This document shows positions 5,550 to 12,699 of a stretch of DNA of 64,000 nucleotides, one piece after another (positions within the stretch are counted from its first letter, which is position 1; the number at the start of each line of letters is the position of its first letter). Both the position numbers and the translations under genes were made by a program. The DNA lies in the NCBI GenBank assembly GCA_025558095.1, contig JAIVFI010000031.1, positions 248,001 through 312,000 of the forward strand, read 5' to 3'. The stretch is from Hyaloraphidium curvatum SAG 235-1. Taxonomy: Eukaryota > Fungi > Monoblepharomycota. The notes under the pieces are model-generated. The model saw only the letters and a program-made list of their open reading frames with translations, ran no database searches and was not told where the DNA came from.

Positions 5550-7507
5550 TCACTTTTTGAGGCCGCGCATCAGCCACGCGGGCATCTTGGCCCCCTTCTC
5601 CTTCCCACTACCGTCTTCCGTCTTCTTCTCCGCGGCGGCGACAGCGGGCGTCGGTCGCGCCGCGGGTGCCTTCTCGTCAACGCTCATGTCCTCGGCACCC
5701 ACGACTGGCGCGCTGGCGGTTCTCGGGTGCGGTTTGAGCTGCTTCGCAGCCTCGCTCGAGAGATAGACTACCGTCCCGCCCGGGATCTTCCAGGAGAGGT
5801 GCACATTGCACGCGGGGGCCATGCCGGATGCGACAAAGGACGCTGCTGGGTCAAGTTCTTTCTTCGACAATCCGGGTGTTGCTGGAAAGGGAACAGGTTG
5901 AAGTCCTCTGAGGCGAGACGGGCGAGGGGGATGAGTGACTTACTGAGGTGGAACTCTCTCTTGGCGTCCTGTAGGACGGACGAGATCACGGAATACAGCT
6001 CCGATACTGGCGAATGCAATCAGAGCTTGTGAGACGGTCCTTCGATGTGCACGCACCCGGCTCTTCGCTCCAAAACGTGGCCTCGAGCGAGACCATGTCG
6101 GGGAAGCGTACTCGGATCCGTGTTTTTGGGTATTTGGTCTTCCGGAGCTGCAGCTCCTTTGCCTTCTCCTGGTCCCGCAGTTCCTTCGTCATCAGGGGTC
6201 GGTTCAAAAGCTTCTCGGTCTGCCTCCGGCTCTGAGCGAGCAGTAGCTTGAGCTCCGCTTGGGAAAGTTCGAAGAACGAATCAGGCAGTTCGACTGAACG
6301 CGGGAGATTAGGTGAGAGCCAAGCCCATTCGCACCGAGGGCTTCACGTACTCGACGCCGCTCCCTCTCCGGCAGGCGGAGGCTGGAAAAGCGACACATTC
6401 CTGTCCAGCGGTCCACCGTCGTCCGCCTCCGCGGCAGCGGGTTCCGAGTCGGGCGGAAGTTGCCCTCCGGATCCAGGTCCTTCAACGGATTGCAATGGTT
6501 CACGTGGCAGATCGTCCGGCTTCCGCATCTCGGTAGCGGACGGAGCCGGCGCAGCACTGGCAGAAATGTCCGATGGTCCGCCAACCGGTGACGCTTGCCC
6601 TGCGCTACCAGCGTCCACCAACGGCGTCGCAGCAGTATGCGCCGTGGCCGGAGAGGACCCGGGTGCTCGAGCGGGTTCGGGGCCGGCTTGGGGTGCTTTT
6701 CGTGCACACTCAATGGCCTGCATCAGCGCCTCGTTCAAGGTGATATCGGAATGCCGAAACAGCACGCGGATGAGACCGCTGCCCGAAGACAGGCCCGCGG
6801 CGGCGAGGGTCGTGTCGTGCAGCGTGGGGATCGAGGAAAACTCGTTGTTCATGACGATAAGCACTGGCATCATGTAAACCGGCGTCCGTTTGTCCGCAAA
6901 GCTCTTCAGCGCCTTCAGAAGCGGGTTGCTCGAATCCGCCGGAGGTACCGCCTCCCGGCGGGTGAGGTTTATGGGACTTGACGGACAGCAGTCAGCAGTT
7001 TCCAATACTCTGCAATCGATGAAGAGCCCACTTGGTCTCCTGAGTCTCAAAGTGACGAAGGACATTCCACAGCGTGGTGGACGACTTGAACTTGCCAACG
7101 AACCTGCCTTCCTCCAGCTGAAGCGCAACAGCCACCTCTGCGGACGCAGACGCTAGAGCAACAGTGCTGTATGAGACCCGGTGTTTGCGCCGCGCGCCCG
7201 GCAGCAACGTGCCTTGGGACGTCGAGACCCGGACCAGTTCGAGCTTGGCTCCCGGCGCCAGATTCGCGAACCGCATGGAAAGCGACAGATCCAGCACCGT
7301 CTTATTGTGCCTTTGCGATCCGGCAGAGTCATTAGCCTCCCGCACCGCGATGAAGCGCCGCCAGAGGACCCACTTGAGGCCGTATCCCGCGGGCTCCACC
7401 TTGCCCTTCTCGCACGCCTGCGCGAGGACTTGGGCCAGAGACATCGTGGGCGTCGTCTTAATCATCAGCTTCCGGTTATCCGGAAGCACAATGTTCACCG
7501 CGCTCAT
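5550..7507 (-). CDS. TUG/ASPSCR1-like UBX-domain p97 adaptor (Ubx4-like)
   Basis: N-terminal ubiquitin-like domain (KTTPTMSLAQVLAQAC...LDLSLSMRFANLAPGAKLEL) and C-terminal UBX (KYPKTRIRVRFPD...LEATF). Confidence 0.85.
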
Positions 7508-7689
7508 CGTGAATGAGCGCAGTGGCAACGGGGCAGATAGTGGTGTTTTCAAAACAACCGGGACTCTGTGCCAAAAGAAGTTCTATATCACTACCTAAAG
7601 CGAATATAGGCCCTTGAATTCCTAATCACCGCATATCATTCTGACGCTCTGACGCTTTGATCGCTTCACGTCTCTATCTGCACTATAAG

Positions 7690-8714
7690 CTAAACAACAA
7701 CTACCAAATTGCCGAGCTGGAAGCGCACGTCAATCGTCAGCGTCGTCAGCCCGGTGGTCATGGGGAAGGCGGTTCCGGAATTCTGGCCGATGAAGTCGAT
7801 GATCAGAGGCTTGATCCTCAGGTACCGAAAGTGCATCAGAATGGGTATTGCGTCGATGTTTTGAACCGTCCTGGTCGAGCTATGAAGTCAGTAGTAGAGG
7901 TCTCGATCGATGATTGCTTACGCACTGCCAGAGGGCGGGTCCGTTGAAGACGTTCTGGCAGAAGACCTTGATGACCGCCTGTGCAGGCGGAAACCCGGGC
8001 GTGCCTTGATGTCCAGGTATGAGCAATATGGCAAGGATGTGGGGCGCCAGTCCGTTCATGATGGCATTGCCAAGCGCCCGGAACTCCCTGTTGACCATGT
8101 TGGTTGTATCACCGTTGGCGATCTGGAAGTAGCGTCCGATGGATCCCGATTGCATTCCGTGGTTCATCCCCATATTGATCACATTCATTTTCTTAACTGC
8201 CGGACCGACGGGCTGCGCCATCAGGATGTTTCCATGGAGCACCCTATTCATTGCGTGCAACGGGAACCAGGGAGGCATTGGCAGCCACCAAAAAGGGTTG
8301 TATGCTGGATTGAAGACCGCCAGAGAAGGTATGAGGGCCCACTGCAAGGGGCCGAAGACGCCAAAGTTTTGAAGAAAGTTGTGCACAGTCCCGTGCACGG
8401 TGGGATCGTAGACCAGGGCGCCCCAACGCACCCGAATGAAGTGGTCTATGGAAAGAAAATCCCGAGGACCGGCCAATGCCAGGGGAAAAGCCATGTGCCG
8501 GCCTCAAGAAACCGGGGGTGCAGAGGATTGACGGGATTCGCGCGGGGATCCGTGCTCGAGCCGGGTGAGCCGAACCCCAGTCAACCTCATTCACACAATT
8601 CCTGCAGTTCGTTGGTGAGCTCGACTCGGGATTGCCTCCGACGTAGTCGCTGACCTTCTTTCTTTCAGACGTCGGTAGTTTTGCGCCCCGCTTCGCTCTC
8701 CGCCGGCATGGCAT
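7690..8714 (-). CDS. Orphan protein with CxxC...DH (HNH/His-Me-finger-like) motif, divergent from the Fanzor gene
   Basis: Exon 1 from ATG 8714 (KLPTSERKKV...CRNCVNEVDW); acceptor ttttctttccatAG at 8446 gives D-H-F-I-R-V-R-W-G; intron 7880-7925 (GTGCGT...ctactgac...catAG) adds STRTVQNIDAIP...LVVVV*. Function is inference. Confidence 0.5.
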
Positions 8715-8980
8715 TCGGGTGCCGAGTCCGAGTCCGCCTCGCCGGCCGCATGGCCATCCACTGCACCAGCCGGGTCTAGGTGGGCCGCAAGTACACGGTT
8801 CGCTAAGTGCGCGATTCTGACCTCGCACTCGTTCCTTCTACACCTCCTCCAGGGCGCTGGTGACCAGAGCCGCCATTGCCTCCGACCTCGACCCCTGCCC
8901 AAGTCACCGAATCGAGGTCCGTTCCCTCGACCGTCGACGTGTATCAATCGAGCTCTAACATTGTTTGCAACAGCAGTGAC

Positions 8981-11900
8981 ATGGGGTCGAAACGAGGTCG
9001 AACATCGGACAAGGGGTCGGACAGCGACGATCCCGGCGAAGGGTCTTCGGCACTCCCACCTGCTCCCCGGAAGCGCGCCAACCAAACCAGCGAGTCCGAG
9101 GTCGTCGATGCTGCAGCTCAGCTTCCCGTGGCCGTGGCGGTGCCGCCCAACTCCGAGTCCGACGACACGGAGCTCGCATCGTCGCTGGTGGCCGCCGTGT
9201 CGCAGAATGACACCGAGTCGGATGACTCCCGGCCCAAGGAGGCGATTCCCCAGAAGCGGCCCCGCAAGGACGGCGACAAGGGCAAGGAGCAGGCCGAACC
9301 CGTCCCCTCGTCTCCGAAAGGCCCCGAGCCCAAGAAGGCGAAGAAGAAGGGCTACGATGCCGCCGCCGCCGCTGCCCAGGCTGCCCTGGCGCCCGAACAT
9401 TCTGCCCACCTCGAGCAGGCCAACGTGCCCACCGGTTGCCCCGCCCTGCTTTGCGGAAACACTGATCATTGGGATACCGGTCACGGCGACGGGAGCGGCT
9501 GCCAGTTATTTCCCTGCGGGAGCGTCTACCACAACACCAAGGAACATCTGAAGCGGCCCGATCCCCGCATGCCTTTCATGTGCCCGCACTGCGACCCGCT
9601 CAACACACTCGACCACGACGAAGATTTCCACTCGGTCTGCGGCACGTGTGGCGAGCTTGACCATGGCGACATCGCCCACGCGCATCCTTGCGACGCCCTC
9701 GTGTGCACCGGGAGGATCTGGGCGTCGCGTTCAAAGGAGGAACTGTGGGAGATGGTCGCAAATGGCTTCCTGTCCGAGAACGTGCTGTACTCGTGGTTCC
9801 CTCTGATCTCGTACGAGGACCACGTGCTCGAGCACAAGCATAGCTTCGTTTCCGCAGAGGAGCCCAACGGTTGCCGGCCTTTCCTCGTTCACTGCGGCTC
9901 GCTGGGCCACACGCGCGCGGCGCACGGCGGGGTAGAGCCTCTGTACTGTTCGCAGTGCGGATCGTTTGAGCACCGGGCCAAGGAGCACGTGCACTACATG
10001 TCTGCGTGCCACACGAGCGCCAACGGCTGCGGACAAAGGGGTCACTCGAAGGTTACCGCCGGGGCCTGCGTGTTCAACATCAACGATCTGAAGAAGCTCA
10101 CGCCCAAGGAGGCGCTGGACGAGCTCATGGGCCCGCAGTCTGCCCAGAGGACCGTTGTTATGGCGTTCCAAAAGTTCTTCAGGTATGGGGACCGGACGGC
10201 GCGGGAACCCGCGAGCCCAGAGGAGGAACTAGCTGCCACGCTCTACGAGGTCATCGAGGATGCCATCGGGCGGTTCACGAAGATTTCGTTCGAGATGTCT
10301 CTGTTCATGGACCTCTTCTTCAAGTACGTGCGCGACTTGCGGCTACTGGGAGGGGACCTTCGGTACCCTCACCTGGACATGAGCCTCGGCCTGAACGCCT
10401 TCTTCGCCGTGGCGGCGCCACTCGACGGCGACGAAGACCACGCCGATACTCTGGTGCCGCTTCTGAACACGTTCCGCGACACGGAATGGCTGGGCTGCGT
10501 CAAACGAGCTGCTCGTCATGGTTACAAGCGGACCTCACGGATTGGCCTCGGCCAGATCATGCGGACCGCTTCGCAAGGCTACGTGACGGCTGCCATGAAC
10601 TCGGTGAAGGGAAACCTGCACGATCGGGTGCGCGCGTGGACGATCTGCAGGATTCGCATCCGGCTGCACAAGCACGGTCGTTTTGGCCCCCAGCAACCAA
10701 ACCAGGGCCGTACGCTCACCAAGGGTGAAACCACGGCCATCGCGACCCACTTTGTCAACAGCCTGAAGTTCTGGGATCCGAGGGAGCACCCCGCCAACAC
10801 GAACCGGCCCTTCACGCTGCCAAACAACGAGCTCTACGACAAGGTCACGACCGACCCGCTGCTCCTGGAGATCTGCCGCGACGTCTACACCGAACTGCGC
10901 GACGACCTGCTCAAGGGTCTCTACCTCAACCCGTACTGGGTCGCGTACCACTGGCAGAGGTTCTTCGACGTCCTGTTCCGCATCCAGCGGGAGCACGAGG
11001 AGCTGCGCAAGAAGCTGGTGCAGTGGACGGAGAACTTGAGCAAGAGCGAGAGGAAGTTCGCTCTCCGCAACTTTCCCTACAACCACAAGCTCGTGAAGCC
11101 CTTCAACGTCCTCCCGCGCTTCTCGATCGAAGCCAAGCACATCCTCATCGACCGCATCGCTCTTCACCAGCTCCTCCAGGTGGCGCAGCGGCGGCTCGGC
11201 CAGGAGCCCACCTCGCTGGCCGACTACCTCGCCGCGGAAGCCGAGGATCCGGAGCACTGGTGGCGCATGTTCTTCCGGCCGGAGAAGGTCAACACCGGCG
11301 GCGCCAAGAACCCGTCGAGGCACTTCGACTACTCCTTCTCCACCAACGCCGTGCAGGCCTCGATCACGGTTCGCGTGCGGAAGCCGTCGGAGGAGCAGCC
11401 CGGCACGTCGTTCTCCGACATCAAGATCCCCGGCATGTCCGTTGCCGGGCTCGACCCCGGCAGCACAGCCATCCTCACGGTTTCGACGGGCCTCTCAACG
11501 CCGGGGGACGACAAGCACCACGGCCACAGCAAGGCCGTCAGCGTCTCCGCGGGCGAGTACTACCACCTCGCCCGGTACAAGAACAACACGTGGAAAGCAA
11601 ACCAGCGCAAGAAGCGGCACCCGTCCATCCTCGAGATCGAGCGCGACACGCCCGTGGCCAAGGCCTCCACGGTCGCGGACACCAAGCTGTACATCCACCA
11701 CTGTCTCAAGCACCTCTCCACGATCGTCGGCTTCTACGGGACAAAGGTCCACCGGCGGTCTCGGTTCGACCGGTACATCGGCAAGCACACCGCGCAGGAA
11801 GCAGTTGCCGAGAAGGTCATTGAGGGCTGCGGCGTCGAAGCGGAGCGCCTTATACTTGCGTTCGGCAAGGCCAGGTTCCGTCACAACATGCGCGGCGGCG

Positions 11901-12297
11901 TAACGACTCCAGGGTCGGCACTGGCGTGGCTGAAGCGCATCCTGCGCCGGCGCGGCGTCACGGTCACCGAGGACGTGGACGAAGACATGACGTCGCAGAT
12001 CTGCGCGGCGTGCTGGGAAAAGGTCGGCAAACAACACCCGAAGAACGGGCACTACCAGATCAAGGATTGCAGAAATCCGGAGTGTTTGATCAAGTGCTGG
12101 AATCGGTTCGTTGTGTTGGGTTCTCTGCACGCCGTTCCTGACTCTTCGATCGCAGGGACGTCATGGCTGCCACCAACATCCGCACCATTGCCTTGTCGGA
12201 GATCCTCCACGGAGGCAGGCCTCCCGTGTTCTACTCGACGCGGAGGGCCAACTTCGAGGGACGCGATCCGGCGAGCGCGAGTGTCATCGTCAACTAG
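8981..12297 (+). CDS. Fanzor (eukaryotic TnpB/Cas12-like RNA-guided RuvC nuclease), ~1088 aa; exons 8981-12105 and 12156-12297
   Basis: RuvC-I VAGLDPG (D at 11453); Gly in LILAFG where TnpB has Glu; relocated Glu in VDEDMTSQICAAC (E at 11981); C4 zinc finger CAAC...CRNPEC; RuvC-III WNRD-V-M-A-A-T-N-I restored by removing intron 12106-12155. Confidence 0.9.
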
Positions 12298-12569
12298 GGT
12301 CTTTTGGCCCTCCAACGACTCCTGCGTGTGTGACGATCCCGCTCAACGGTCAACTCTTGCGATCTTGAGTTCGCTCTCGAAAGCAAGGGTCGTGGCCGAT
12401 CCGATCCCGACTGAGCTATGCAATGATGTTTTGATCGGGCGGGGCATCTATCCGCGGGCTCGGTCCGGGCGATCAGTGATCCTGAGAAGACCCCGGCGGG
12501 TGGGAGCAGGAACCAAAACAATGGAGGTGGGGTTCATTGCTCCGGAGTCGGCGTAACCAATCGCCGTAG
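12297..12569 (+). ncRNA. Candidate Fanzor omegaRNA scaffold / element right end
   Basis: Directly follows the Fanzor stop. Visible stems: 12297-12305 with 12485-12493; 12347-12398 long hairpin capped by gag-TTCG-ctc; 12401-12406 with 12433-12438; terminal hairpin 12549-12566. Exact RNA boundaries unknown. Confidence 0.55.
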
Positions 12570-12699
12570 TACGAGCAGGATGCCGGGAGGTATTGTGGTT
12601 GGCTTAGTTGTTGGTTTCTTAGAGGCTCCCGTTCATTCTGTAAACGGTACTATCGAAGGAAGGATCTCACGGAAGCAGAGATCAAGACATGCGAAACAG

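Follow-up and report, generated by a model that had tools for sequence, protein, structure and literature searches.

What is a large and apparently intact RNA-guided nuclease gene doing among the housekeeping genes of Hyaloraphidium curvatum SAG 235-1, a fungus of an early-branching lineage? The gene lies in a window of 64,000 nt (assembly GCA_025558095.1, contig JAIVFI010000031.1, positions 248,001-312,000 of the forward strand; coordinates below are those of the window), where a sequence-only reading had recognized a Fanzor of ~1088 residues with host-like codon usage and a possible activity as a programmable DNA endonuclease. Its neighbors are indeed of the housekeeping kind (mitochondrial carrier, TUG/UBX, Sybindin/TRS23, CDK11-like kinase and ING genes), but the gene itself is no resident among them, since it rides on a multicopy transposon.

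This element spans positions 7540-12650 (5.1 kb), and similarity among its copies is confined to these limits. The genome holds six near-full copies with a pairwise identity of 94-99%, one degraded copy and, on contig 14, a sister family that is 41% identical. Comparison of the copies places an imperfect terminal inverted repeat at either end (left, 7540-7566; right, 12624-12650; both read on the plus strand), which match at 17 of 27 positions, and the left terminal bases differ among copies. The target site ATA (7537-7539), also the predicted TAM, adjoins the left end in five of the six copies and in the contig 14 sister, its TA (7538-7539) being the left target-site duplication; the right TA (12651-12652) follows the element in all five copies whose right end is intact. 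TA duplication is a hallmark of IS630/mariner elements. Since no DDE transposase lies inside the element, it is classed as non-autonomous and mariner-type, and not as a mariner proper. No transposase was found within the loci of this family, nor was one with matching ends identified among the families examined. Helitron-like ends were considered and dropped, the element having a TA duplication and inverted repeats instead. In the whole assembly, only six left and six right ends were found, which leaves no ghost copies. With respect to a viral origin, the viral contigs searched contain no close relative; in JGI metagenomes, no further relatives were recovered by protein pattern and the 26 DNA-pattern matches are due to chance.

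In the window, the insertion occupies a ~90-bp intergenic gap between TRS23 and UBX; it lies upstream of UBX, whose start codon is 32 bp away. With the junction (7507-7540) just upstream of UBX/TUG, the promoter must come from the left arm of the element or from beyond it. A patchwork of variants is common to the window copy and to copies L015, L018 and L019, which suggests gene conversion or recombination among copies. On contig C1, ~5.1 kb (1439308-1444408) is inserted in the right end of one copy, with an apparent 9-bp duplication and no clear ORF in the half examined. Duplications of 9 bp are made by Mutator-like elements.

The Fanzor gene is encoded on the plus strand in two exons. Exon 1 (8981-12105, 1041 codons) is a single open frame starting at the ATG at 8981 and backed by profile and structure matches. 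Exon 2 (12156-12297), supported by its reading frame and by its match to protein P0007, begins DVMAATNI, aligns with P0007 across DVMAATNIR and ends with its stop codon at 12297. Between them lies a 50-nt spliceosomal intron (12106-12155) with a GT donor, a CTGAC branch point and a CAG acceptor, which splits the arginine codon of the WNRD motif. Splicing yields 1041 + 1 + 46 = 1088 residues, in line with the size first estimated, and the motifs on which the Fanzor call had been based are all present, namely GLDPG (residue 823), LILAFG (957), VDEDMTSQICAAC (999) and CRNPEC (1030) in the one frame of exon 1, and WNRD across the intron. The intron is found in all six copies, and the intronless metagenomic relatives P0003 and P0004 (42-43% identity) read CLIKCWNRDVMAAANI straight across the splice site, a homology that supports the 12105/12156 splice model. 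If the intron is not removed, an open frame continues for ~150 further codons (12106-12556) in five of the six copies. The NCBI models of two other copies (P0001 and P0002) do retain it and lose the third catalytic aspartate, so that surveys demanding an intact triad could miss the family.

The N-terminal part of the protein (8981-9436) is of low complexity and carries the expected basic NLS-like clusters PRKRA, KRPRK and PKKAKKK at residues 29, 92 and 117; a nuclear-localization role for them is extrapolated from PMC10530073. It is followed by ~8 zinc-knuckle-like repeats of the form C-x2/4/6-C-x4-H-x4-H (9437-10069, residues 153-363) with conserved ligands, and then by a WED-REC-RuvC-TNB core (10130-12103) delimited by the alignment of relatives, the profile and the structure match. 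Codon usage is host-like, as proposed, with a GC3 of 0.84 versus 0.90 in the adjacent ING gene. The two knuckle-bearing Fanzor families of H. curvatum each have one intron, the two positions lying 17 codons from each other, and their metagenomic relatives are intronless, which points to separate intron gains in the two families.

Assigning the protein to a family required a profile of its relatives because exon 1, when searched directly against Pfam and PDB sequences, gave almost no matches. An HMMER search yielded 260 relatives, and the profile and alignment were built on 98 of them, the two exons being handled separately in profile, structure and database searches. This profile matched SpuFz1 with an E-value of 1e-68, GtFz1 with 1e-56, PpFz1 with 4e-53 and Fanzor2 with only 2e-15. 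The AlphaFold model of exon 1 residues 384-1041 (pLDDT 91.7) has the Fanzor1 WED/REC/RuvC/TNB fold and superposes on SpuFz1 with a TM-score of 0.62-0.64 by query and 0.66-0.70 by target (Z 22-24); Z-scores are 20.7-23.7 against Fanzor1 structures and 8.1 against ISDra2 TnpB. Judged by profile and predicted fold, the protein is thus a Fanzor1, nearer to Fanzor1 than to Fanzor2 or TnpB, which bears out and narrows the initial identification. The Fanzor1 family is already known, and the new features are the knuckle array, the long RNA arm and the cargo gene. Hyaloraphidium is absent from the Fanzor literature searched, whose coverage is incomplete, and from the supplement of PMC10432273.

The catalytic residues announced by the sequence-only reading are in place. 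In the profile alignment, D825 (11453-11455), E1001 (11981-11983) and D1043 (12157-12159, RuvC-III, in exon 2) align through the DPG, DE..TS and WNRD motifs with D383, E541 and D606 of SpuFz1, the catalytic residues of that enzyme (PMC10432273), and should by analogy meet in one active site. RuvC-I has D825-P-G, E1001, the rearranged glutamate some six residues ahead of the finger, is kept in 95 of the 98 aligned rows, and G962 and the C4 finger (C1008, C1011, C1030 and C1035) also belong to the aligned core. The Fanzor motif of Bao and Jurka, D-x(125-275)-[TS][TS]-x-x-C4 finger-x(5-50)-RD, is matched here by D825, T1004-S1005, the same four cysteines and, after splicing, R1042-D1043. These residues make an active nuclease plausible.

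The stretch that follows the stop codon is a candidate omegaRNA. Its predicted scaffold (12297-12652, plus strand) would end with the right TA duplication, and the predicted guide (12653-12667) consists of host flank, differs in every copy and takes its 14-15 nt length from SpuFz1 (PMC10432273); the TAM is predicted to be 5'-ATA, with the guide starting at 12653. From stop codon to TA, the 355-nt arm is 96-97% identical among copies. It has no Rfam match, and when this arm is taken by itself the energy of its fold is not significant (z -1.1). Its predicted fold comprises a 5-bp hairpin at the stop codon, a helix pairing 12316-12322 with 12544-12550 around ~220 nt, a small hairpin and a terminal helix that runs from 12566 and closes on the final ...UACUA. 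When each arm was folded on its own, with anchors picked by eye, those of five families (window, contig 14 and three metagenomic; 220-355 nt) converged on the same three-stem skeleton, in which a short linker precedes a 6- to 10-bp helix around a variable insert, a small hairpin and a terminal helix reaching the last bases. Pair probabilities in the first helix are mostly 0.86-1.0, with compensatory A-U/U-A and C-G/U-A swaps, and three families have in common a GGGUC/GRCCC hairpin at the stop codon. Conservation breaks off at ...CTA in every family, and in the metagenomic one it does so at or just before these bases, with variable flanks beyond. A MAFFT/RNAalifold alignment did not recover the skeleton because large insertions caused the arms to be misaligned. 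In published Fanzor1 omegaRNAs, three stems are found with the target-site duplication inside the scaffold (PMC10711439) and the first stem has 7 bp (PMC11423790), a pattern that the folded arm fits.

Taken together, these features make it probable that the locus is a non-autonomous IS630/Tc1-mariner-type transposon carrying a Fanzor1, its omegaRNA and an orphan cargo gene, which is mobilized in trans and homes by cutting empty ATA sites. A DDE transposase encoded elsewhere would insert the element at ATA sites. Processing of the right-arm transcript would yield an omegaRNA with the TA duplication as the end of its scaffold and ~15 nt of host flank as its guide, and the Fanzor-omegaRNA complex may enter the nucleus by means of its basic N-terminus. 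There it would recognize ATA followed by a guide match, that is, the empty insertion site, and cut it, and repair from the element-bearing chromatid or homolog would restore or spread the element. The window copy could also serve its relatives, its protein using the guides of the four frame-broken copies with an intact right end. The cleavage and homing steps of this scenario are modeled on SpuFz1 biochemistry and bacterial TnpB. Transposase-less Fanzor elements have precedents in Spu-1 and PUl-4 (PMC3627910, PMC10432273), and Fanzor-only mariner derivatives are known (PMC3627910). Restorative homing has been shown for bacterial TnpB but for no Fanzor, and one review questions whether DDE transposons gain much from it (PMC13565253).

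Several observations count against this model, namely the variable left end, the missing end-matching transposase, the ordinary folding energy of the arm, the automatic alignment that missed the RNA skeleton and two departures from consensus in the protein itself. At the WED TDG position, TDG being a Fanzor1 trait (PMC10711439), the window copy reads T788-N-A, two other copies T-D-A and the contig 14 relative T-N-G, while TxG is found in 92 of the 98 relatives. After RuvC-I, it has DPG-STA versus DPG-RxD (DPGR) in most relatives and DPG-RKD in one other copy. The Fanzor could then be a decaying passenger that binds omegaRNA and DNA and cuts poorly or not at all. Four of the six copies are frame-broken (three by frameshifts, one by an insertion carrying a stop), a second open copy has its right end interrupted by a ~5-kb insertion, and only the window copy combines an open frame with an intact right end. 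Moreover, mariner excision leaves scarred sites. Such sites fit homing badly (PMC13565253). We nevertheless consider decay unlikely, as the triad and C4 finger are intact and pN/pS, from rough counts of variants pooled among copies, is 0.33 in the core and 0.28 in the knuckle region versus 0.74 in the fast-evolving first 150 residues. In addition, SpuFz1 has DPN and GtFz1 a non-canonical triad, and both still cut (PMC11423790).

Most Cys/His ligands of the knuckle array are invariant across four families that are 40-42% identical. The knuckle proteins form one clade (support 1.0, or 0.84 with P0009 included); P0009, a protein of the sister branch, is preceded by a comparable run of Cys and His, as is another fragment. 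The pattern was seen in none of the other relatives fetched, many of which are fragments, and the array was found nowhere else in the genome or in the other proteins searched. Pfam and Atlas gave only weak zf-CCHC leads. Against PF00098 (C-x2-C-x4-H-x4-C), the score of 16.3 bits is below the 20.8 cut-off and the last ligand is mostly His, so that the array resembles a zinc knuckle and is not a member of that family; its AF2 model (pLDDT 37) is unreliable. The literature searched, which is incomplete in coverage, contains no Fanzor with zinc knuckles. Within our model, the array would be an add-on that binds nucleic acid, the simplest ligand being the long omegaRNA arm. A bolder proposal, which we find possible though rather doubtful, is that the clade is a Fanzor1 subtype in which a CCHH knuckle array co-evolved with the 220- to 355-nt arm and serves either to chaperone or process the RNA or to connect the RNA-guided complex with the transposon ends or transposase. 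In the literature searched, neither OMEGA nor Cas12 effectors are described with such a module.

Upstream of the Fanzor gene, the element carries on the minus strand an orphan cargo gene of ~249 residues (7690-8494), spliced as in NCBI model P0154 (exon 1, 8494-7926; intron, 7925-7871; exon 2, 7870-7690). With 14 synonymous versus 8 non-synonymous variants among copies (pN/pS 0.18, again a rough pooled count), it appears to be under purifying selection. It is confined to copies of this element, and no homolog, family or domain was found in Pfam, PHROG or Atlas. An identity as an HNH nuclease is not supported, there being no profile match and the proposed upstream CxxC exon being frameshifted in three of the six copies.

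The contig 14 sister (L021:1944-7481) is an apparently complete, single-copy, mariner-type element of 5.5 kb with near-perfect inverted repeats matching at 25 of 30 positions, ATA/TA flanks, an intron-bearing HTH + DDE_3 transposase, a knuckle-bearing Fanzor1 (41% identical to that of the window) and a 232-residue Cys-rich cargo gene on the minus strand. It directly precedes an ankyrin-repeat-like gene. That in both Hyaloraphidium elements the Fanzor is preceded by a cargo gene on the minus strand, that the knuckles are conserved clade-wide and found nowhere else in the genome, and that the weak inverted repeats leave the mobilizer unexplained could mean that array and cargo couple the Fanzor to transposition, for instance by binding the ends or the RNA and recruiting a trans transposase, and not to the cutting of empty sites. 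This would be surprising, however, because the cargo genes of the two elements are unrelated, only ATA is common to the insertion sites and the catalytic residues are retained. Least credible of all is a domesticated host gene acting in genome regulation or defense, since the housekeeping neighbors, the intron, the host-like GC3 and the status of sole fully intact copy are outweighed by the near-identity of six copies that carry TA duplications in unrelated flanks (grounds on which a domesticated single-copy gene was rejected), by the tiny intergenic gap so close to the UBX start codon and by a guide that is mere flank.

The element has company in this genome. In two further young families, a DDE_3 frame of 800-930 codons is followed ~7 kb downstream, on the same strand, by a Fanzor that an intron splits, a pairing present by coordinates in 10/10 copies of one (contigs C3, C5, C6, C7, C11, C15, C28 and C35) and 5/5 copies of the other (C4, C5, C16, C25 and C36). 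Other Fanzor-like frames of 985-1205 codons without a knuckle array occur at C12:393476, C18:375796, C20:251519, C2:467208 and C2:426595. This genome, with its many young Fanzor families, some accompanied by a mariner-type transposase and some not, is thus well suited to the question of what use Fanzors are to eukaryotic transposons. The window element offers a testable Fanzor1 for which a short TAM (ATA) is predicted, the end of the scaffold is defined and several guides of natural origin exist.

Among known systems, CrFNuc of Chlamydomonas also has spliceosomal introns and six genomic copies in a transposon, but is Helitron-associated and belongs to another host lineage (PMC10530073). PpFz1 and GtFz1 (PDB 9CF0, 9CER; PMC11423790) display the same fold (Z 21-22), AT-rich TAMs (ATN, TTAA) and a first omegaRNA stem of ~7 bp. 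They differ in their shorter omegaRNAs (75 and 150 nt versus the 355-nt arm) and in the knuckle array, of which no report was found for them; in GtFz1, N replaces the third D, which is kept here as D1043. PGv-1, PUl-1 and PUl-4 (PMC3627910) resemble the window element in their TA duplication and non-autonomous, Fanzor-only derivatives, and their layout of transposase, extra gene and Fanzor is that of the contig 14 sister. However, the extra gene of PGv-1 is a GIY-YIG nuclease, whereas the window cargo has no recognizable domain and its family no transposase. The closest counterpart is SpuFz1 (PDB 8GKH; PMC10432273, PMC3627910), with its Fanzor1 fold (Z 22-24 over ~520 residues) and a D-E-D triad whose E just precedes the C4 finger, although it has only ~635 residues versus 1088 and ~15% identity, and lacks the knuckle array and the RuvC-III intron. 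Its scaffold is 75 nt long versus the 355-nt arm, and its element, Spu-1, has 134 ghosts where we found no ghost or MITE copies; conversely, the window element has degenerate inverted repeats (17/27) and a cargo gene. Both elements are nonetheless multicopy and transposase-less, with inverted repeats of ~30 bp (imperfect in the window element), a TA duplication and an omegaRNA (predicted in the window element) in the right end, and the CATA TAM of SpuFz1 and the ATA predicted here both end in ATA.
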